Source: Octopus bimaculoides
Taxonomy: Eukaryota
DNA: 47,940 nt
Assembly (NCBI RefSeq): GCF_001194135.2
Contig: NC_068982.1
Location: 77,633,427 to 77,681,366 of the forward strand
Direction of reading: 5' to 3'
Made by a program: the position numbers and the translations under genes. Position 1 is the stretch's first letter. Each line of letters starts with the position of its first letter. The notes below the pieces were generated by a model. The model had not been told where the DNA came from and did not search any database. It saw only the letters and a program-made list of their open reading frames with translations. Positions 2,432 to 47,205 of this stretch are shown in pieces.

Positions 2432-5400
2432 TGGCAACGGCCACACTCAAATGGTGTTTTTTTACGTGCCACCTGCACAGGTGTGAGTCCAATGTTTTGT
2501 TCACATGCTACCGCCACAAGTTCCAGTAAGGTGAAGCTGGAAACGATCGTGCTCAAATGGTGATTTTTACGTGCCACCGGCACGGAAGTGAGACTGTTGC
2601 TCTGGCAGTTATCCCGCTCAGATGGTGCTGTTAGTGCTCCACTACCACAGGTGCCAGTCATCGAATTTGGTTCAGTTTCGATCTCACTTGCCCCAACAGG
2701 TCTTTGCAAGCTGAGTTTAGTGTCCAATGAAGGAAGGTTGGCATGGGTTCCAGTCATCGAATTTAGTTCAATTTCGATTTCACTTGCCTCAACAGGTCTT
2801 CGCAAGCAGGGTTTTGTGTCCAAAGAAGGAAAGGTACACATAAATCGGCTGGCTACACCCTTGGTAAAGACCACGGATTATGGTCTCACTTGTCTTGCCG
2901 GGTGTTCTCACGCACAGCATATTTCCAAAGGTCTCGGTCACTAGTCATTGACTCAGTGAGGCCTAATTTTTGAAGGTCGTACTTCACCACCTCATCCCAG
3001 GTCTTCCTGAGTCTACCTCTTTCACAGGTTCTCTCAACCACTAAGCTGTGGTACTTTTTTACACAGGTATCTTCATCCATTATCGCCAAATGGTCATACC
3101 AGCACAATCGTCTCTCTTACACACCACAACTGATGCTTCTCAAGTCCAACTTTTCTCTCAAGGTACTTACACTCTGTCAAGTATGCACACTGGCATTACA
3201 CATCCATCAGAGCATACTGGCTTCATTCCTTGTGAGCTTACGCATGTCCTCAGCAGTCACGAACCATGTTTCACTACCATGTAGCATGGCTGTTCATACA
3301 CATGCGTCATACAGTCTGTCTTTTAATGCTAATGCGAGAGGCCCTTTGTCACCAGCAGAGGTAAGAGCTCTCTGAACTTGGCCCAGGCTATTCTTATTCT
3401 AGCAGCTACACTTTCAGTGCACCCACCCCCACTACTAACTTGGTCACCCAGAAAGCGGAAGCTATCAACTACGTCTAGTTTTTCTCCCTGGAATGAGATA
3501 GAAGTTGTTTCCTGTTTGTTTGCAGTCTTTATTGCACCTGAGCATCTGCCACATACAAAAACTATCTTGTTGATTAGCCTGCCTTTGATATTGCTGCACC
3601 TCTTATGTGTCCTTAGCTTACACTGGGTATATTGTATAGAGTTTCTACCTACGCCTTTTCTACAGTTCGAGCAGGGCCATCTACTGAAGGGGTTTGGGGT
3701 TTGTCTACCTTTCTACTTATTAGGATTTTGGTTTTAGCTAGGTTGACTCGAAGGCCCTTCGATTCTAATCCTTGTTTCCACACCTGAAACTTCTCTAGTT
3801 CTGATAGTGACTCAGTAATTAGAGCAAGGTCATCAGTATAGAGGAGCTCCCAGGGACAACCTGTCTTGAATTCCTGTGCTCTTGCCTGGAGGACTATAAT
3901 AAATAGGAGGGGGCTGAGGACTGAACCTTGGTGGACCCCTACCTCTACCTGGAATTCTTCACTGTACTCATTGCCAACCCTCACCTTACTGACAGCGTCC
4001 CTGTACATGGCTTGCACAGCTCTCACTAACCATTCATCTATCACTAGTTTCCTCATTAACCACCAGATAAGGGATTGGGTGACCGTATCAAAGGCTTTCT
4101 CCATGTCAACGAAAGCCAGGTACAGAGGTCTATCTTTGGCTAGGTATTTCTCCTGCAGCTGTCTTACCAGAAATATAGCATCAGTGGAGCTTTTTCGTGG
4201 CACGAATCCCAACTGCATCTCATCTAAGCTGATTCTCTCCCTAATTAGTTGGGCTATGACCCTCTCCGTGACCTTCATTACTTTGTCCAACAACTTGATA
4301 CCTCTGTAATTGTTTGTGTCTAAAGCATCACCTTTACCTTTGTAGCATTTGACTATGGTGCTGCTACACCAGTCATTGGGTATGACTCCTTCGTGTATCA
4401 CCTGGTTAACTATACGAGTGACTAGGCTATAGCCAACATTGCCAGATATTTTGAGCATCTCCGTAGTCCTGATGGGCCGGGGGCTTTCCCTGTCTTCATA
4501 CTCTTGATTGCTTTATCTACCAAGATACTGTCAATTAGGATAGCTGGTCCCTCTGTTGGGTCAACATTCGGCAGACTCTCTTTCTCCCATTCATTCTTTC
4601 TATTAAGCAATCTTTCATAGTGGAGTCTCCAAACCTCTCACTTTGCAGCCTCATTTAGTGCAAGTGAACCATCATCCATGCGGACAAATTTCTCTCCAAC
4701 AACATCACGATTCTCTCTCCTACACTGTCTTGCAACATGAAATACTTAAAGTCTTTCATCCTAATGGCGCAGAATATCGGCAAATGTTTTCTTATCTGCT
4801 TTATTTAGGAGACAGGCTAAATAAACCTGTCTCCTAGCTTCCCTTCTGGCAGTCTGATACAATTCCCTGCTACTTCTGTTCTTCCAGTCCTTCCAAGCCT
4901 GTTTCTTTTGTCTAATAGCCCTGTCAACTACATTGTTCCACCACCACGTTACTTTGGGTCGAGAGGGGACTTTGCACCATCCACAGATCTGGTCAGTGGC
5001 TCTCAGCAGGTTGTCCTGTAGAAACATCCAGTTGTTTTCCACATCATGTGATGCTATATCCCTTTCTATTTCGTCGAAGGCTTCGAGTGTTGTTGGCACT
5101 CCGTCGCTTACAACGTTGAGGGTTCCAGTTGATCCAATCAACGGAACACCCTCCTCGTGAAATTAACGTGCAAGTGACTGAGCACTCCACAGACACATGC
5201 ACCCTTAACGTAGTTCTCAGGGATATTCAGCATGACACAGTGTGACAAGGCTGGTCCTTTGAATTACAGGCACAATAGAAACAGGAAGTAAGAGTGAGAG
5301 AAAGTTGTGGTGAAAGAGTACAGCAGGGTTTGCCATCATCCCCTGCCGGAGTCTCATGGAGCTTTAGGTGTTTTCGCTCAATAAACACTCACAACATCTG

Positions 5401-6207
5401 GTCTGGGAATCGAAACTGTGAGTCTGCTGCCCTAACCACTGGGCCATTGCGCCTCCACTTGAAGGCTTCGAGTAACACATCTCTAAATCTCTGTCTATTT
5501 GCAGGATCTTTAAGCTTCCAGACCCTTCTCCTCCAAGCTGGTCTACTTCTGGACATCCATTCAGCCCTTATCCCGAAGTCACTAACTACTAATCTGTGTT
5601 GAGGGGTACATTCTTTGCCTGGGAAGGTTTTGGTATTTATAAGCAGTCCTCTTTCCCTTTTTCTGGTGAGGATGTAGTCAATTTGGCTAGTGTGTCTGCC
5701 AGAACAGTAGGTGACTAGGTGACAGGCAGGTTTCCTGAAGTTGGTATTGCAAACCATAAGATCATTTGCATCACAGAACTCCAGTAGTCTGGTTCCCTCC
5801 TCGTTGCGGGAACCAAAGCCATAGCCTCCATGTACGCCATGGAAGCCCCCTGTATGTTGTCCAACATGTCCATTGAAATCACCAGCCACAAAGAGAAAGT
5901 CCCTGTCATTCGTCAACAAGGTAGTCTGCAATAGGGTGTCATAAAATTGGTCTTTCTGCCCGCCCCGGTTGAGGGGTATAGGCTGAGATAACAGTAGCCA
6001 ACCTATGGTGAAGCACTAATCTAATCTTAAGTACTCTGTCACATACTCTAACTACCTTGATTACCTTATCAACCCATTTCTCTGCAAGAAGTATACCCAC
6101 AGCCCTGACCCCATCAGTGTTCCCTGCCCAGAAAATCTTGTACTTGTGTTCTTTGCCTGTGAGGAACCTAGTAGAACCTCCTCTCCACCTTACTTCTTGG
6201 AGGCAGC
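2432..6207 (-). mobile_element. Near-full-length decayed RTE LINE (APE endonuclease + RT + 3' UTR)
   Basis: APE motifs in ORF 5389-5931 (VAGDFNGHVG, SQIDYIL, PQHRLVV); RT motifs in ORF 3649-4458 (NYRGIKLL, LAFVDMEKAFD, GVHQGSVLSPLLF, LLYTDDL); several stops and frameshifts; interrupted by a SINE at 5089-5460. Confidence 0.95.
5089..5460 (-). mobile_element. tRNA-derived SINE family 2 inserted in the RTE, with 13-bp TSD
   Basis: Minus-strand head ggaggcgcaatggcccagtggttagggcagcagactc...gtttcgattccc (A/B-box-like); exact flanking direct repeat GAAGGCTTCGAGT at 5076-5088 and 5461-5473. Confidence 0.9.
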
Positions 6208-6790
6208 ATATATATATATATATATATATANNNNNNNNNNNNNNNNNNNNNNNNNNNNNNNNNNNNNNNNNNNNNNNNNNNNNNNNNNNNNNNNNNNNNN
6301 NNNNNNNNNNNNNNNNNNNNNNNNNNNNNNNNNNNNNNNNNNNNNNNNNNNNNNNNNNNNNNNNNNNNNNNNNNNNNNNNNNNNNNNNNNNNNNNNNNNN
6401 NNNNNNNNNNNNNNNNNNNNNNNNNNNNNNNNNNNNNNNNNNNNNNNNNNNNNNNNNNNNNNNNNNNNNNNNNNNNNNNNNNNNNNNNNNNNNNNNNNNN
6501 NNNNNNNNNNNNNNNNNNNNNNNNNNNNNNNNNNNNNNNNNNNNNNNNNNNNNNNNNNNNNNNNNNNNNNNNNNNNNNNNNNNNNNNNNNNNNNNNNNNN
6601 NNNNNNNNNNNNNNNNNNNNNNNNNNNNNNNNNNNNNNNNNNNNNNNNNNNNNNNNNNNNNNNNNNNNNNNNNNNNNNNNNNNNNNNNNNNNNNNNNNNN
6701 NNNNNNNNNNNNNNNNNNNNNNNNNNNNNNNNNNNNNNNNNNNNNNNNNNNNNNNNNNNNNNNNNNNNNNNNNNNNNNNNNNNNNNNNNN

Positions 6791-6823
<33 letters not shown>

Positions 6824-16562: not shown

Positions 16563-16811
16563 CACACACAAGAATATAGATGCACATGCACACATAAAAC
16601 AAACAAGAATTAGGCATAATAACAGAGAGTGGCAGGGGTTTTGCTAAGTGTGTGTCAAAGGGTCACAAAAGATTTGTCCAACATATACCAGCATGGAAAA
16701 CAAACATGAAGTGATGATGACAATAACAATGACAACAGCAACAATGACAATAATGGGGAATAAACAGAAATTAAGGTAGTTCCAAGACATTTTCTTTTTA
16801 GTTGTCAAATT

Positions 16812-19007
16812 CACTGTGCCACACTCAAAAAACTACAAGAGATCTGTGGCCATTTTTATATGCAAAATGACATGGGAAATCCATTTCTGGCCTTCTTTTT
16901 GTTGAATTAGGCATGGTTTCTACAGAATTATCACTGTACACCCTTTTTGTCATTATTATTGAATAAAATTCTCTACTGCATTGTAAAATGGGTTTCAAAC
17001 CAGGGCTAGAGACCAATCTTAGTAATACCTACAATGTGATTCAAAGCTTGTGTTTAATGTTATTTTTTTATCTTTCAGATCTTATTTGTTTTCAACAATG
17101 AGTACAAGACAGTGCAAAAATGATCCAAACAGATTCTGTTATATCTGTGGTGAATTGACTTTGCTAAAGAAAAGCGCAGTATTACACACCATATCAAGAA
17201 AATACACAAGGCATACTTTGATTGTAAGGAGACCAGGACAAGTCATGGGCTCCTCATGTGTGAAGACATTGAGTGCCTGGTATGCAGAAAAAAATGTTCA
17301 CATGAAGTTTGGTGGGCCAATGATTTGGCGTGAGCAGAAAGATCACTCTAATGATTACTATTTCTGTCACCATGACTTTACAGGCTGTACTACAGCAAAG
17401 AAAAAGAAACGCATTGTTTACCCAAATTTGCAATCAGCAATGTGCTCAGTAGAACACTCAGAAAATTTGCCTGTGCCCAAACCTCCAGATCAAGAAATGC
17501 AGAGTTCCAGCAGTGCTGATGAACATTCCCGTGGTGAATGTGTGGAGCCCAATGATCCAGAAAGCGAGAATAAACCAATACCATTTTCTCAAGAGGCTCT
17601 AAATGACTTGTGCAGGGATCTCTATTTAACCAAAGAGAAAAGTTAGTTTCTGGCATCAAGGCTTCAAGAACGTAATCTTCTTGAGAAAGAAGTGAAGATA
17701 ACACTGTACAGAAAACGTACAGAGGATCTGCTTGCATTATTCACCATGGCGAATGACTTATACTTTTGTAATGACATCACTGAACTTTTTGAGCAACTGG
17801 AAAATACAATATGATAAAACCAACTGGCAACTTTTCATAGATGCATCTAAGGACAGCATCAAAGCTGGTCTGCTACACAATGGTAACATTCTGCCTTCTG
17901 TTCCCATAGCTTATGGCATAACCATGAAAAAATCATATGAAAATCTGAAAGCAATTCCAACAAGCATACAGTATGATGACCATACCTGGCATATTTGTGC
18001 AGATTTTAAGGTTGTGGCCATGCTTACTGGCCTTCAGCTTGGCTATACCAAATTTTGCTGCTTCCTGTGCTTATGGAATTCCAGAGCAAGAGCTGAACAT
18101 TATGTATGCAAGGATTGGCTGATCTGAGATGAAATTGGGCAAGGAAAACACATGCACAAACCACTTGTGAAAAGTGATAGAATTTTTTTTACCACCTTTG
18201 CATATTAAACTTGGTTTGTTTAAGCAATTTGTGAAATCCTTGGACAAGGAATACTCTGCATTTGCATATCTTGCAGAAAAGTTCCCTTCCCTGAGTCAAA
18301 CTAAAATTAATGAAGATTTCTTCATAGGTCTCCAAATTTGAAAAATTGTACTTGATGAAACCTTCATCACACATCTCAAGAGTAAAGAGAAGCTTGCTTT
18401 TGAGTCATTCAAGAAAGTTTGCAATAACTTCCTGGGCAACCATCGTTCAGAAGACTATGTGCAAGTTGTGAATAATCTGCTGAGCCATTATCATGATATG
18501 GGATGTGACATGTCTCTAAAAGTTCATGTGCTTCACTCTCATTTGGATTTTTTGGGGGAAAATCTTGGTGATGTGAATGATGAGCATGGCGAAAGATTCC
18601 ATCAGAATATTTCAGTGATGGAGTAACAATTCAAAGGAAAATGGAACTCTGGCATGTTGGCAGACTACTGCTGGGATATAAAAAAAGAAGATCACACTCC
18701 GCACAAGAGGCTTAGAAGGACAAAAGTTGTTTAAACTGACAGGTGTGTTTTTAATTCATAACCAATGTATGTCTTGTTATACCAACTAAATTTTTGTTTT
18801 GTTTTTTGTAACTTTCAGTATTTGCAATGTTGTGTTCAATACGCAATATTATGCAGTATATTATAAAACATATGGTTCACGGTACAGGAAAACGGTGCCT
18901 AATCTGGAGAAATAAAGGTCAGAACCAGAATCAGGACAATTTTTTGACCCAGAAACAAGTCTTACTTAACTTGTACTTTTTTTGAACCTGAAATTTGTTG
19001 CACAGTG
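16812..19007 (+). mobile_element. Full-length decayed Chapaev3-like (CMC) DDE DNA transposon, 2196 bp
   Basis: Ends CACTGTGC (16812) and GCACAGTG (to 19007); shared subterminal block TCAAAAAA(A)(C/G)TACAAG; flanking direct repeat AAATT at 16807-16811 and 19008-19012; transposase pseudogene inside. Confidence 0.88.
17098..18734 (+). pseudogene. Chapaev3-like transposase pseudogene (about 540 codons, with stops and frameshifts)
   Basis: MSTRQCKNDPNRFCYICGE...WREQKDHSNDYYFC...YPNLQSA...LNDLCRDLYLTKEK...WQLFIDAS...ICADFKVV...YTKFCCFLCLWNSR...LPPLHIKLGL...MSLKVHVLHSHLDF...DEHGERFHQ...MLADYCW; putative D/D/E at 17840, 18002, 18591; acceptor-like ttttatctttcag 20 nt upstream of the ATG. Confidence 0.88.
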
Positions 19008-19599
19008 AAATTTCAGCTGCCACCTGTTTAGGAAACTGTTTATACAAACATTATTTAAATATGAAATGATCGTTTTTGAATGCAAAAATCAAATATTTGA
19101 TGCATGTATTTGGCATTTTAAGGTTGCCAAATAATTTTCCATTTTAAGGAGACATCTATTGAACTGCAGAATTGATACAATATTTTGATAAAAACATGGT
19201 TAACTTTTTATTTTTCAATACTTTAATTCTTTGTATATAATGAGTTTATTGCTAGGTTTAAAAAAAAACCTTTTAAAAATATAATAATTACAACTTATCA
19301 TGGTTGTTTCATTTTGTAGTTATTTTCATTATTCAAAAATGTAAGTTATTTGTTTTTTTAATTTTATCAAATGACCATGTTTTATGATAATTAGTCACAT
19401 GAAATGAATTTTATAATGAAGCAAAATTAAAAATATTTTTGTTTTATACACCCAGGCTTATTCCCCATTTTTTTAGGAGTGTGTAGCCACAAAACACATA
19501 CCAGGCACTCCATTAATTTTCCAGCTCAAAGAGGTGAGCTCTGTTCTATGCTCGGGTCAAGGCATATAATGCAACCCCCAATATCAATAGCAGGGCCTG

Positions 19600-30639: not shown

Positions 30640-33130
30640 TTATGCCCTAAAATATACACGAATATGGCTTTTGAGGCCTGCCAAAGACTTGCATGCTTTT
30701 TGACAATTAGTGATAGTAAAGTTCATGGAGCTGTAAACTATACAATGCCTTTTCAAGACACTTTTTCATCTGCATACTTTATGACAGAGTATGCATTTGA
30801 AATCATCTGTCCATCTATAATCAATGTGCAGTTGTGCAATGTGTGATTTCATATGGCTCCTTAGCCCAGCCTTACTAAGACAAATCTTTCCACATTCATC
30901 ACATGTAAGACCATCACATTCATTAATGCTTGTTAGAACATCATTGCAGTCACTTTTTCTCATGTTTCTTTTGATCTTTGCATACTCCATTCTCTTCCTT
31001 TCAAATTCATTTTTGCCTTCATACACAATATTTTTCCATTTTTGTCAACAATGCACTAAATCTTCCTGACTCCAGACAATCTTTGTACTTCATCTTCATC
31101 TTTGGTTTGTTGAACGGATGCTTACTTTTCACCAATTCTCCATAAAAAAGTTGTTTAGGCATTCTGTTGTACTCCATCTCAATCTGTACTGCAATAGCAA
31201 AGCTTCAATACCGAAGCATTTCCTTCTTTCATGCACCTCATCGTCAGTCACAAACATTTTCCAGCTGATCCTCAAAATCCTTCTGAGACATTGTAGATGA
31301 AAATGTTCCATAAGTTTTAAGTGCATACGATACACAGTCCAGGTTTTGCAAGCATACAATAAAGAGGTTAAGATACAATGTATTATATACCTTAGTCTTT
31401 GTCGCAGTGGAAATACCATGTCTAGATCATAAGTGGTCTTCCAGTTTGCCAAAAGCAAAACTGGCTTTCTGAATGCGCAGTGACACTTCATCATTAAGAT
31501 TCACTAATGTGTTTAGTGTGCTCCCTAAGTAAATTAACTTAGAAACCACAACAAGTTTTCTTCCATACATGAAGATACCAGGTTCTATGTATGGCATTCC
31601 TGGTGCTGGCTGAAACATGACAACAGTTTTGGTTAGATTTATGATTAAGCCAAGTGTCTCACAAGCCATTGAAATTGCATTTATAAGATTTTTCATGTCC
31701 TCAGTATGAGTGACAATATCACAATCATCTGCATAGAGGAGATCTCTAATAAGAGTTGAGGATGTCCTCGACTTAGCTGAAAGTCTTCTGATGTTAAAGA
31801 TTTTTCCTGTTGTGCGATATCTGATATATATGCCTTCATAGGAGCCTTTGAAAGCCAACTGAGAAACTATAGTAAAATAGAGAGTGAAGAGAATGGGTGC
31901 TAGTATGTCACCTTGTTTTACTCCATACATGACAGAGATAGGTTCCAAGAGCTTTCCACCAATGTTGTTCCTTACTTCCATGTCATCATGAAACTGCTTC
32001 AGAATAGTGAGAAACTTTACTGGGCATCCAAGTCTTCTCAAGATCTCCCACAAGGCAGTTCAACTGACAGAGTCAAAAGCCAATGAATACCTGATAAAGT
32101 CCTATTTGCTGTTCCACACACTTTTCCTGTAACTGCCATGCAGAGAAGATCATGTCAACAGCACCCCTACCATTTCTGAATCCATTCTGTGATTCAGGTA
32201 GGAACTCATTAGCCACATATATCTGCAGCCGGTTCAACATTATTCATGATAATACTCTGCCGGCTGTAGCAAGCAAACAAATACCATGAAAGTTATTGCA
32301 TTCATCCTTTTGTCCTTTTCCCTTGAACACAACTTCCATAGCTGCATCTTTCCAGTCTTTTGGCATAACTTTATTTTTCCATATCTTCTGTATTACTGCT
32401 GTCAGCATTTCTAGCAAGTAGTAGCCCACAAACTTAGAGAGTTCTACATTCAGACTATCAACTCCTGGTGCTTTGCCATTATTCAGCTTTAATATTGCTT
32501 TTATTGTTTCCTCCACTGATGGGGTGTCATCTAAGCACTCAATGGGTGCATTCTGTGGAATCATATCAATACTTTTTCCATCAACAACTGATAGTCAATT
32601 CAGAAGTTCATTGAAATGTTCCTCCCATCGATTTAAGATTTCTTTGGGCTCCCTCAATAAAACACCACTCCTATTCTTCACATGAGCCAAAGTAGGACAT
32701 GATGGCCCATACACCTCACAAAGGAAAGTATATAATAACTTAGTGTTCTTAACATTGGAAGCAGCCTTTATCTCTTCTGCTTTCTTCCATCACCAAGTTT
32801 CTTGCATGCTTTGAATCTTTCTTTGCACATATGCTTTTATCTCTTTGAAAAAAGCTCTATTTTGGTCGGAATCATTTGCTAGTATTTTGTATCAAAATAT
32901 TTTCGTCTCTTTGAAACCGCAACCTGTTCACTGACAAAACTTCACAGAAGTGATGCAGCATGAAGTTTTGTCAGTAAACAGCACACACAAACATTCATTG
33001 CCTTTCATTTGTGTGTCTCTATGTGTGTGCGCAAGTGTGTATTGGCATGTGTGTGTGTGTGTCACTGTTGAAGTCGCTCTTGCAGCTTGTTTGTGTATAT
33101 ATTGGCTTAGTGGTACAGAGTGTTTGAAAA
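30640..33130 (-). mobile_element. Decayed RTE LINE, third family, with C-terminal C2H2 finger array
   Basis: KLNNGKAPGVD, NFHGICLLATAG, GVKQGDILAPILF, DLLYADD, FHLQCLRRILRISW, then CDECGKICLSKAGLRSHMKSH and two further degenerate fingers before the TAA at 30642-30640. Confidence 0.9.
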
Positions 33131-44751: not shown

Positions 44752-47205
44752 TTGCTGTGCAACGAGCCACCCAGAGCAATGAGCAGCATTCAGCACGCCG
44801 AACAAGAAATGCTTCCGCTATTGCAGATGCATGAGCTTCAGAGACTGCAGCACAATGTGCAGATCGACTTACAAGAGATGCTTCCTCAACTGCTGCTGCT
44901 GCATGAGTTGCAGAGACTGCAGCACAATGCGCAGTTTGACATACAAGAGATGCTGCAGCAACTGCTGCTGTGTGTGCTACGGAGACTACAGAGGAAAGAC
45001 AACAACAACTGGGGGCTGCACGATGTTCCTACTCAAGGCCATGTTCCTCGCATTGGTCAATGACAGCATTCAACTACGATCTTACAATTGACTACAGTAA
45101 TCACCCTGACGTTCAAATAGGATGCTTGTCAACAATCTGCCAATTTTGTGGAGCTAAAAAGTGGCCTGGAGAAACTCCCAGCATGTGCTGCACCAACAGT
45201 AAGATTACAGTACTTCTTCTACAAGGTCCTCCACCCCTTTTGACTGATCTTTTAGCAGAGGCGTCTCCTTATTCTCATGACTTTCTCAAGCAGATATGTG
45301 CCTACAATTGTGCATTCCAAATGACTTCCTTCAGCACCAACATCATATGAGATGGGCATTTCATGCCTTCCTTTAAAGTGCAGGGGCAGATTTACCATAG
45401 AATTGGTTCCCTGCAGCCGCATAATGCTGCCTCGCCTCAGTTTCTTCAGCTCTACTTCGTGGGCGACTACGTTGACCAGGCAGCCAGGAGAAAGCTGTAG
45501 CTCCTGCTACAAACATTGCTCTGATATGTTGGCTGCAGGAAATGATTCACGTGACAAACAGCTATGTCCACAGTTTCAGGTATGCTTTAGAGGCCTCCAT
45601 ATCGCCAGAGTTAACTTTAGTAGTTAACACTGATAAACGGCCTTCAGGAGAACATTCTTGCCGCTTCGATGCACCTGCATGCAATGAAGTTGCTGTACTT
45701 GTGCAGGAGGACCACCACCACAACAGAGACATCGTTCCACGACATCACAACGATGCACTCCAGTGTATTTGTGAAACCTATCAGTCTTATGACACCCTAC
45801 AGTATCCACTGCTGTACGTATATGGTGAAGACGGCTTCCATCTGGAAATTTCCCAAAACACTTCCACAAGCAAATCTGTAAATTGTATGGGATGCTATGC
45901 CTACCACTACATTATTCGAGAAAACAGCCTAAATCACTTTCACCTTTCATGCGACCTCTTTCAACAGCACACAGCTGATAATGCAGTTAAGATTGAATCT
46001 CAGCGTTTGTGGTATATACGATTCAATCAGGCTAAATTACATGCCAAGAAATATATCCATCTCAGAGACAGCATCAACAACGACATGGTACCGAGGAGTA
46101 TTGATCAACTATGCATTCTGCCTTCATCTTTCACAGGTGGTCCATGCTACAAGCATGAAAGGACACAGGATGCCATGGTTTATGTTCAACATTACAGCAG
46201 ACCAGACCTTTTATAACATTCACCTGCAACAGAGAGTGGAAAGACATCCAAATGAGCCTCCTGCCTGGATAACAGGCTCATGATAGACCTGATGTTATCG
46301 CCAGAGTTTTCAGACTCAAACTGCTCAGATTCATGGATATTCTTGCAAAAGGTGAGATATTTGGTGCTGTCTGGTGCTACATGTTTTCCATGGAGTGGCA
46401 AAAATGGGGCATGCAGATACTCTTCTGTGGCTAACTACTAAAATAAACGCTAATGACAGACAGGTTCATATCTGCAGAAATACCAGACCCAGCTATTGAC
46501 AAAGAGTTACACGACATTGTAAAGGTGACCATGGTTCATGGTCCATGTGGACTAGGCTATCCCCACAGGGATTGTATCATGGATAATGTTTGCTCAAAAA
46601 AGTTCCCAAAACGATTTGTGCATGTAACTCATACAGCTACAGATGGCTATCCATTGTACAGAAGACGAAAACCAGATGATGGAGGGTTCACTGTAAACAT
46701 TGGAAAATTTGAGGTTGACTTTAGGTAGATCGTCCCTTACTGCACACTCCTCTCAAAGACATTAACATCGAATTTTGCAACTCCATAAAGTCGATAAAAT
46801 ATGTTTGCAAATATGAACAAGGGATCTGATGCAGTCATGTTCAGCCTTCAAGGCAATATCCAAAATGATGAGGTCACCCAGTATCAGGCCACACGATACA
46901 CTAGCAGCAATTAGGCGTTCTGGCATACTTTTGGTTTTCCAATACACAAAAGACATCTTGCTGTCATGCAGCTTGGTGTATACTTGAAATATGGCCAATA
47001 AGTATACTTTACCAACATCAATGCTGCCCAATTGGCACAGGAGCCAGGAGATACAACTCTAACTGTGCGTTTTTTTAAACTTTGTCAGTTGGACCCATTC
47101 GCATGCACACTACTATACCCACAAGTGCCATCCTACTACACGTGGTACAACAAGACCTAGAGAAGAAAATCAGGCAAACCTGTTGAAGGATATGATGGCA
47201 TTAAG
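44752..47205 (+). mobile_element. Decayed Helitron RepHel gene, N-terminal and Rep (HUH) region; helicase absent
   Basis: CQFCGAKKWPGETPSMCC, AYNCAFQMTSF, FKVQGQIYHRIGSL, YDTLQYPLL, KIESQRLWYIR, ILPSSFTGGP, PDLFITFTCN (motif 1), MEWQKWG (motif 2, HUH lost), MVHGPCG, GYPLYRRR, KYVCKY (motif 3); many stops and frameshifts. Confidence 0.93.
44829..44990 (+). repeat. 72-bp (24-codon) tandem repeat in the Helitron N-terminus
   Basis: Units start at 44829 and 44901 (gcatgag..cagagactgcagcacaatg...acaagagatgct...actgctgctg), with degenerate flanking units; encode ETAAQ...RDAA repeats. Confidence 0.85.

Follow-up and report, generated by a model that had tools for sequence, protein, structure and literature searches.

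Introduction

Chapaev3 transposons are cut-and-paste elements whose families duplicate a 3-bp target, TWA with AAA and ATA as minor variants, between an A and a T, as confirmed by empty sites (Zhang et al., 2014; PMC4079192). Together with Chapaev they have been placed in the Transib superfamily, with a Chapa domain that is common to these transposases and the N-terminus of RAG1 (Kapitonov and Koonin, 2015; PMC4411706), and elsewhere they are classified as CMC elements (Yuan and Wessler; RepeatMasker DNA/CMC-Chapaev-3). The Chapa/NZD zinc finger is common to Chapaev3 transposases and RAG1, and a 2026 preprint, in which transposon ends are not discussed, links the Chapa domain with the NZD structure of RAG1. 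We analyzed a stretch of 47,940 nucleotides from Octopus bimaculoides (contig NC_068982.1, positions 77,633,427 to 77,681,366 of the forward strand, assembly GCF_001194135.2), referred to below as the window. Positions 16812–19007 of the window very probably hold a Chapaev3 DNA transposon of low copy number, here in a dead copy, whose family duplicates 3 bp of its target and has ends with a conserved offset of one helical turn.

The published termini of Merrow_PM (Chapaev3-1_PM) begin with CACTGTGTAACA and have the same heptamer as the octopus element (PMC4079192); CACTGTG is an already known Chapaev3 feature. Outside V(D)J recombination, a 12/23-type asymmetry of the ends is known only from a few Transib elements, while the ends of ProtoRAG are of the 27/31 type (PMC8355894). 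The ends of Chapaev3 elements may bear on how the 12/23 spacer rule originated.

Results

Asymmetric Ends of the Octopus Element

The boundaries of the element were read directly from the window sequence. CACTGTG forms the left terminus (16812–16818) and CACAGTG, which is CACTGTG when read inward, the right terminus (19001–19007). Both arms share a 12-bp terminal repeat, CACTGTGC[C/A]ACA. The left, gene-upstream module, CACTGTGCCACA (16812–16823, plus strand), departs from the family consensus CACTGTGCAACA by one substitution at 16820, and the right module (18996–19007, minus strand) reads CACTGTGCAACA inward. At the left, short-spacer end, a linker of a single C and the first inner block, TCAAAAAACTACAAG, occupy 16824–16839 on the plus strand, the block itself lying at 16825–16839, 6 nt inside the heptamer. 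The right, gene-downstream end alone carries a 10-nt extra linker, AATTTCAGGT (18986–18995, minus strand), and is the long-spacer end; its inner block, TCAAAAAAAGTACAAG when read inward, is found on the minus strand at 18985–18970, 15 nt inside the heptamer. The two inner blocks are in register at an offset of +10. The difference in spacing amounts to 9 nt when it is anchored on TCAAAA and to 10 nt when it is anchored on (G/C)TACAAG, because the A-runs of the two ends differ by one base. The element is flanked by AAATT at 16807–16811 and again at 19008–19012, which direct reading gives as the left and right copies of an apparent 5-bp target-site duplication. A preliminary description of this locus, made from its letters alone, had reported these termini, the A-rich blocks, the spacers of 6 and 15 nt and AAATT on both flanks, and all of them are present; likewise, duplications of 3 bp (ATT versus AAA) and 4 bp (AATT versus AAAT) fail for this copy, as it had stated.

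To place this copy within its family, the assembly to which the window belongs (2.34 Gb) was searched with the whole element, which returned 48 matching pieces of 80–96% identity. Searches with the ends only, in which every candidate was scored, gave 24 matches for the left end and 25 for the right; of the latter, two are internal fragments, leaving about 23. The family is therefore small and low-copy, and seven of its copies, including that of the window, have both ends. The same termini and blocks recur at 18 distinct left and 19 distinct right junctions of this genome, so that the end pattern of the window copy is more than chance. CAC...GTG termini are kept in the other copies, except for a few with point mutations at the tip. 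The linkers of 1 nt on the left and 10 nt on the right are retained in all 13 full left and 17 right ends, giving CACTGTGCAACA-C-TCAAAAAAGTACAAG as the left end of the family and CACTGTGCAACA-AATTTCAGGT-TCAAAAAAAGTACAAG as the right end, read inward. Each end is bipartite, with a terminal module of 12 bp and inner blocks that are separated by a gap of 1–3 nt at one end and of 10–11 nt more at the other.

Conservation of the Offset in Related Families

Elements encoding homologues of the transposase were taken from other assemblies, and the offset of each was determined, with the gene on the plus strand, as the best diagonal when its left end was compared with the reverse complement of its right end (positions 13–90). 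A positive offset means that the extra 10–11 nt lie at the gene-downstream end, and a negative one that they lie at the gene-upstream end. Of eight elements compared, seven had a best offset of +10 and one had +11. The seven are the window copy and L005 of this genome, L080 (82% protein identity), L081 (58%), L089 (57%), L086 from the mantis shrimp Oratosquilla and L088 from the frog Ranitomeya; the one with +11 is L082 (56%). The sponge element L096 (Oopsacas) has an offset of −10 and the shrimp element L098 (Palaemon) one of −10/−11. Altogether, the asymmetry was seen in about 14 families of 47–58% protein identity from a mollusc, crustaceans, a frog, a sponge and an insect. The preliminary description had allowed that the asymmetry might be a deletion private to the window copy. 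It is shared by all copies in this genome and by the roughly 14 families elsewhere and is no private deletion; the asymmetric two-part ends that the description had noted are real. On the sequence comparison, the offset of one helical turn is conserved in all related families examined.

The related families carry the same 12-bp module, CAC(T/A/G/C)(G/A/C)(T/G/C)N(C/T)AACA, at both ends. The extra linker directly follows this module at one end only and is usually of the form AATTTnnnnn(n), and the later blocks are in register too, including a distal GCTGATTC at about position 60–70. The linker sequences differ among families (AATTTCAGGT, AATTTGAAGT, AATTTCGAGT, AATTTTAACTT, AAAAACAACT, AATTTTTATG and others) and the inner blocks, which may be A-rich, T-rich or of another kind, are unrelated among families, while the difference in length is steady at 10–11 nt. 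A length that is maintained in this way while the sequences of linker and inner blocks diverge indicates that the spacing would be under selection rather than a neutral inherited indel. The orientation of the offset follows the phylogeny: in the transposase tree, the two orientations correspond to two clades with 100/100 support, the long end being on the gene-downstream side in the octopus clade and on the gene-upstream side in the clade of Garfield and the sponge and shrimp elements. The printed ends of Merrow agree with the negative orientation.

As all families examined are related, a single 10-nt indel in their common ancestor could have reached every one of them and been inherited without any role in transposition. 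This neutral accident, the main rival explanation, is unlikely. The linker sequence has diverged among the families, the length is 10–11 nt across families of 47–58% protein identity with unrelated inner blocks, and unselected non-coding transposon DNA would not hold a length to within 1 nt over such a distance. Moreover, the offset persists where the long end has been swapped from 3' of the gene to 5' of it. The same swap argues against a role of the asymmetry in gene expression, for which the linker would have to belong to a promoter, to a polyadenylation signal or to some other one-sided signal. The linker is AT-rich, has a conserved AATTT start and is always gene-downstream in the octopus clade, all of which would suit such a function; however, a linker of the same type lies gene-upstream in the Garfield/sponge/shrimp clade, it is kept in elements of 1.3–2.3 kb that are too short for the transposase open reading frame (ORF) of about 1.65 kb, and the tip of the element is 12 nt away from it. 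We therefore consider this explanation very unlikely.

These short elements came from a scan of metagenome contigs for the long-end motif, which yielded 15 candidate end pairs: nine copies of a termite-associated family of 1.3–2.3 kb, three elements that represent two additional families, and three pairs of doubtful status (L126/L132 and L150). The three families have a partner end of the short type, with an offset of +10 in 11 elements and +11/+10 in L166, and without a clear offset in L131.

We tentatively propose, as a reading less likely than not, that the one-turn difference between the ends is an ancient, selected feature of Chapaev3 that imposes the pairing of one short with one long end on a RAG1-like transposase. 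Several observations weigh against our overall account of the element and its ends. L090 shares one short block only, at an offset of about +9, and for Garfield (L091) the offset of −10 is weak, scoring 0.50 versus 0.45 for the runner-up. The families from the metagenome scan were retrieved by the long-end motif itself, so that only their partner ends are independent evidence. L126/L132, a single 898-bp candidate seen twice, is an exception with near-symmetric ends (offset +2); it is without a target duplication and so may not be an element. For the Merrow-like fish elements L095 (sturgeon) and L097 (Myxocyprinus), the left ends were not found, and these elements contribute a right end of the short type only. 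The role of the offset in transposition is a presumed one, taken from its conservation. Finally, the structural comparison with RAG1 described below gave low template modeling scores (TM-scores) of 0.29–0.38, and no Transib structure was among its top 50 matches.

Target-Site Duplications of 3 bp

The other two-ended copies of the octopus family all have 3-bp duplications (6/6: L002 ATA, L003 TTA, L005 AAA, L006 AAA, L014 AAA and L016 ATA), none of which extends to 4 or 5 bp, and three of the six are of the short form, as is the window copy (see below). Random pairing does not account for this series, because mismatched left and right flanks of the family match at 3 bp in only about 10% of the pairs; they match at 5 bp in 2 of 341. 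Related elements likewise show 3-bp duplications, namely TTA in L080, L081, L089, L090 and L098 and TAA in L086, L088, L091 and L096, a tally that covers all related families with readable flanks, counted as seven. The metagenome contigs L082, L083 and L085 have non-matching flanks (TGA/TCA, ATA/TAA and TTT/TTA, respectively) and were left out of the tally as possible assembly chimeras across the repeat. The 18 left and 19 right distinct junctions of the octopus family gave the flank profile R-A-W-W-A / element / W-W-A-T-Y, or RA|WWA|TY, in agreement with A|TWA|T, the rule published for Chapaev3. The family's duplication is a staggered one of 3 bp, made at a target that is palindromic and AT-rich.

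According to the preliminary description, a Chapaev3-related family might have adopted a Transib- or RAG-like 5-bp duplication together with asymmetric ends; 3-bp duplications in other copies were named there as the result that would contradict it, and 3 bp is what the tally gave. The AAATT/AAATT of the window copy is perfect, and its 3- and 4-bp alternatives fail. Furthermore, the predicted fold of a related transposase matches RAG1, and the length of the duplication varies (5, 3 and 2 bp) within the Transib lineage (bioRxiv 10.64898/2026.08.26.747230). Against these points stand the 3-bp duplications of all six other two-ended copies, three short-form copies among them, and TTA or TAA in every related family with readable flanks. 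A 5-bp duplication as a trait of the family is hardly tenable and is refuted at the family level; as a point of resemblance to Transib and RAG it is confined to the window copy, both the family and its relatives making 3 bp. This corrects the tempting but wrong idea of a Transib-like 5-bp duplication in the octopus family.

In the window copy, AAATT/AAATT probably marks a real event of an exceptional kind, a single aberrant integration, although its being known from one copy only tells against this. In the simplest reading, the whole 5-bp target core A-AAT-T would have been duplicated instead of its central 3 bp; AAATT shows the A-NNN-T pattern that the usual 5-bp target core has. Alternatively, a 3-bp AAA duplication could have been joined by two extra junction bases. 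The two variants are indistinguishable since each predicts the same empty site, GTCAAATTTCAG. AAATT also follows the right ends of L005 and L006, where the duplication is AAA only, which fits the WWA|TY preference.

The matching flanks might instead not date from insertion: two substitutions in a 3-bp duplication could have produced the match by chance, or recombination could have joined two copies with different flanks. Taken singly, each flank fits the target profile (left, A-ATT; right, AAA-T), the region is AT-rich, and AAATT stands after the two other right ends just mentioned. A sharing of 5 bp is, however, as rare among mismatched flank pairs as given above, and the copy differs from the consensus by only about 3.7%, so that two hits creating a perfect 5-mer are improbable; for the recombination variant, the copy is a single full-length match with no sign of a chimera between its left and right halves. 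We regard an origin after insertion as quite unlikely. The mutated 3-bp variant predicts an empty site with two more bases, GTCAAAAATTTCAG, as opposed to GTCAAATTTCAG for a 5-bp event.

The Transposase and Its Relation to RAG1

The transposase pseudogene of the window copy (17098–18733, plus strand) comprises an N-terminal Cys/His-rich region of the Chapa type and a DDE core with CxxC, LH and Hx4H. Compared with the majority consensus of the coding part, to which it is 96.3% identical at the nucleotide level, it has deletions of 1, 4, 16 and 5 nt, insertions of 1, 1 and 3 nt and several in-frame stops. With these seven indels and the stops in its transposase gene, the copy is a dead, decayed element. 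The majority consensus of the copies, in which one frameshift is left, encodes a protein of about 551 amino acids. When the ORF pieces of the window were scanned against Pfam, no family was matched to the transposase. Full-length identity between the consensus protein and Garfield_BM is 47% (262/554, E = 0; the Garfield_BM sequence was from PMC4079192, Fig. S1). The consensus protein contains CFLC, PPLHIKLG and HVLHSH, corresponding to the C(2)C, LH and H(4)H motifs. In the transposase tree it clusters with Garfield-like, Merrow-like and other homologues, of which there are more than 2000 (2031) of about 550 amino acids across animals. Membership of the family in Chapaev3, a previously known kind of cut-and-paste element, is established; the preliminary description had made the same assignment, which the identity to Garfield_BM, the CAC/GTG termini and the three motifs bear out.

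In an alignment of 36 homologues, D254, D308, C327/C330, L375-H376, H484/H489 and E506 are invariant. The order D-D-CxxC-Hx4H-E parallels that of the catalytic and zinc-binding residues of RAG1. An AlphaFold model of P0006, the transposase of a relative, had a mean predicted local distance difference test score (pLDDT) of 82. In a Foldseek comparison of this model with the PDB, the only significant matches were to mouse RAG1 (6oep_A, E = 4.7e-5; 6oeo_C and 6oep_C), with E values of 4.7e-5 to 2.7e-4 over 449–562 aligned columns, and the next match was Hermes with E = 0.5. Because of the low TM-scores, a RAG1-like fold of the Chapaev3 transposase receives moderate support from the model. At the sequence level, a profile of the 36 homologues gave no meaningful match among the PDB sequences, and none to RAG1 or Transib.

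Short and Long Forms of the Element

The dominant form of the octopus family is the short form of the window copy, of about 2.2 kb, and at least three copies (L005, L006 and L009) have about 880 bp more. The extra segment is inserted relative to window position 17040 (breakpoint 17040–17041) and represents additional non-coding DNA in a minority of copies; as coding sequence it was rejected, there being no long ORF in it. Each form is found at several sites whose flanks differ, and both have therefore been mobile. In L005, the segment (622–1500) stops just before a splice-acceptor-like tract, ttttatctttcag, which is itself upstream of the start codon, and in the related element L080 the left end and the ORF are about 1.1 kb apart. 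Thus the ancestral form may be the long one, and the segment may hold an intron of the 5' untranslated region or a promoter.

Further Chapaev3 Elements and Other Features of the Window

For the transposase, 4968 first-look candidates were obtained in the octopus genome, and those that were scored are 39–55% identical, which suggests many other, more divergent Chapaev3 families in this genome. Among the matches listed with more than about 400 aligned residues, none was free of stop codons.

An intact transposase ORF of 554 amino acids (P0009) is present on six contigs with identical complete ends (L082–L085; Joint Genome Institute (JGI) 3300071567, 3300071648, 3300071650 and 3300071634), and judging from these sequences the family looks recently active in the animal DNA of those JGI samples. 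The Merrow-like elements of a sturgeon (L095, Acipenser ruthenus; right end at 4219) and of a cypriniform fish (L097, Myxocyprinus asiaticus; right end at 4617) agree base for base over at least 58 nt of their right ends (CACTATGTAACACAATTTTTGTTCCTGGG...), and their proteins are almost identical in the tree; this near-identity fits the horizontal transfer of Merrow reported in PMC4079192. On the sponge contig of L096, a gene for a piggyBac-type transposase (DDE_Tnp_1_7; 5034–6779, minus strand) is located past the right end of the Chapaev3 element, at a distance of about 450 bp.

Elsewhere in the window, retrotransposon fragments at 3649–4512, 5389–6015 and 31427–32059, all on the minus strand, look like remnants of the long interspersed nuclear element type. 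Two of their ORFs match the reverse transcriptase model RVT_1 (E = 7.7e-25 and 3e-8) and one matches Exo_endo_phos_2, an endonuclease domain (E = 2.9e-5, below the Pfam cut-off). An ORF at 45476–46216 (plus strand) matches Helitron_like_N (E = 1.2e-16), which points to a Helitron remnant near the end of the window. Runs of N, translated as X in the ORFs, occur at about 1330–1600, 2420–2520 and 6200–6800 and are flanked by simple repeats of the (TA/TATA)n type; these runs are either gaps in the assembly or withheld stretches.

Discussion

The element itself is an ordinary member of Chapaev3, from an old, low-copy family that is new for the octopus genome, and as such belongs to routine repeat annotation. 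A conserved asymmetry of 10–11 nt at Chapaev3 ends was not found in the accessible literature, the Repbase Reports of 2007/2008 and the Dfam entries being outside the search, and since the search did not extend to these sources we treat the asymmetry as a lead rather than a discovery. The text of PMC4079192 contains no mention of terminal inverted repeats (TIR), of the term terminal-inverted or of subterminal sequences, and that of the RAG1 NZD preprint none of TIR.

How might unequal ends serve transposition? The transposase would recognize the terminal module as the substrate for cleavage and for its catalytic site, while the inner blocks would be bound by a second DNA-binding surface of the same protein. 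A difference of 10–11 bp would keep the inner blocks on the same helical face at two distances, so that the two ends would be non-equivalent and could be held differently in one synaptic complex. Pairing of a short with a long end might thereby be favored, making the asymmetry a device for end pairing and end discrimination that would be analogous in principle to the 12/23 spacers of the recombination signal sequences (RSS) or to those of piggyBac. Whether the ends are held differently in one complex, possibly with a preference for short/long pairing, seems to us evenly balanced.

If our tentative proposal of an ancient, selected pairing feature is true, spacer asymmetry of the 12/23 type predates the split of Chapaev3, Transib and RAG, or arose repeatedly in this enzyme family. 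A conserved one-turn asymmetry would add an independent and experimentally tractable case alongside the few Transib elements; intact ORFs with complete ends exist, e.g., in L081 and L082–L085.

Among known systems, the published Chapaev3 families (Merrow, Garfield, Conan; Chapaev3-n in Repbase) resemble the octopus family most closely, with a transposase of about 550 amino acids in which C(2)C, LH and H(4)H occur, with termini of the form CAC...GTG and with a 3-bp duplication between A and T. They differ from it in their target triplets, which are TWA in 85–100% of cases, whereas the octopus family uses WWA, with AAA and ATA as common as TTA and TAA in a small sample. The ends of piggyBac consist of 13-bp terminal and 19-bp internal repeats separated by a 3-bp spacer at one end and by 31 bp at the other. 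The likeness to this system, identical terminal and internal repeats with unequal spacers, is one of analogy only, as its transposase is unrelated in sequence, its target is TTAA and its spacer lengths are different.

ProtoRAG and RAG-like transposons share with the Chapaev3 family a CAC heptamer with an adjacent conserved region, and the ends of the amphioxus element are unequal as well (27/31; PMC8355894). They differ in having an offset of 4 bp rather than a helical turn, 5-bp duplications, and RAG1L and RAG2L genes. Transib elements with 12/23-like ends are Transib5 of D. melanogaster and Transib2 and N1–N3 of A. gambiae.

The RSS of V(D)J recombination is defined by the heptamer CACAGTG, the nonamer ACAAAAACC and spacers of 12 or 23 bp. 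The Chapaev3 heptamer is one base off, the distances from heptamer to inner block are about 6–8 and 16–19 nt across families, and an A-run is present in the octopus family but not in all relatives. The A-rich block, part of what the preliminary description had called RSS-like ends, is no general feature. Its counterpart elsewhere is T-rich or unrelated, and homology to the RSS nonamer was rejected on this ground. RSS/RAG1 and Transib have 12 and 23 spacers and a 5-bp duplication, as opposed to about 6–8/16–19 nt, 3 bp and no RAG2-like gene in the Chapaev3 family. What the Chapaev3 ends and the V(D)J RSS have in common is a heptamer that starts with CAC and lies one base from CACAGTG, a bipartite signal, and partners that differ by about one helical turn, 10–11 bp in Chapaev3 and 11 bp in the 12/23 pair.

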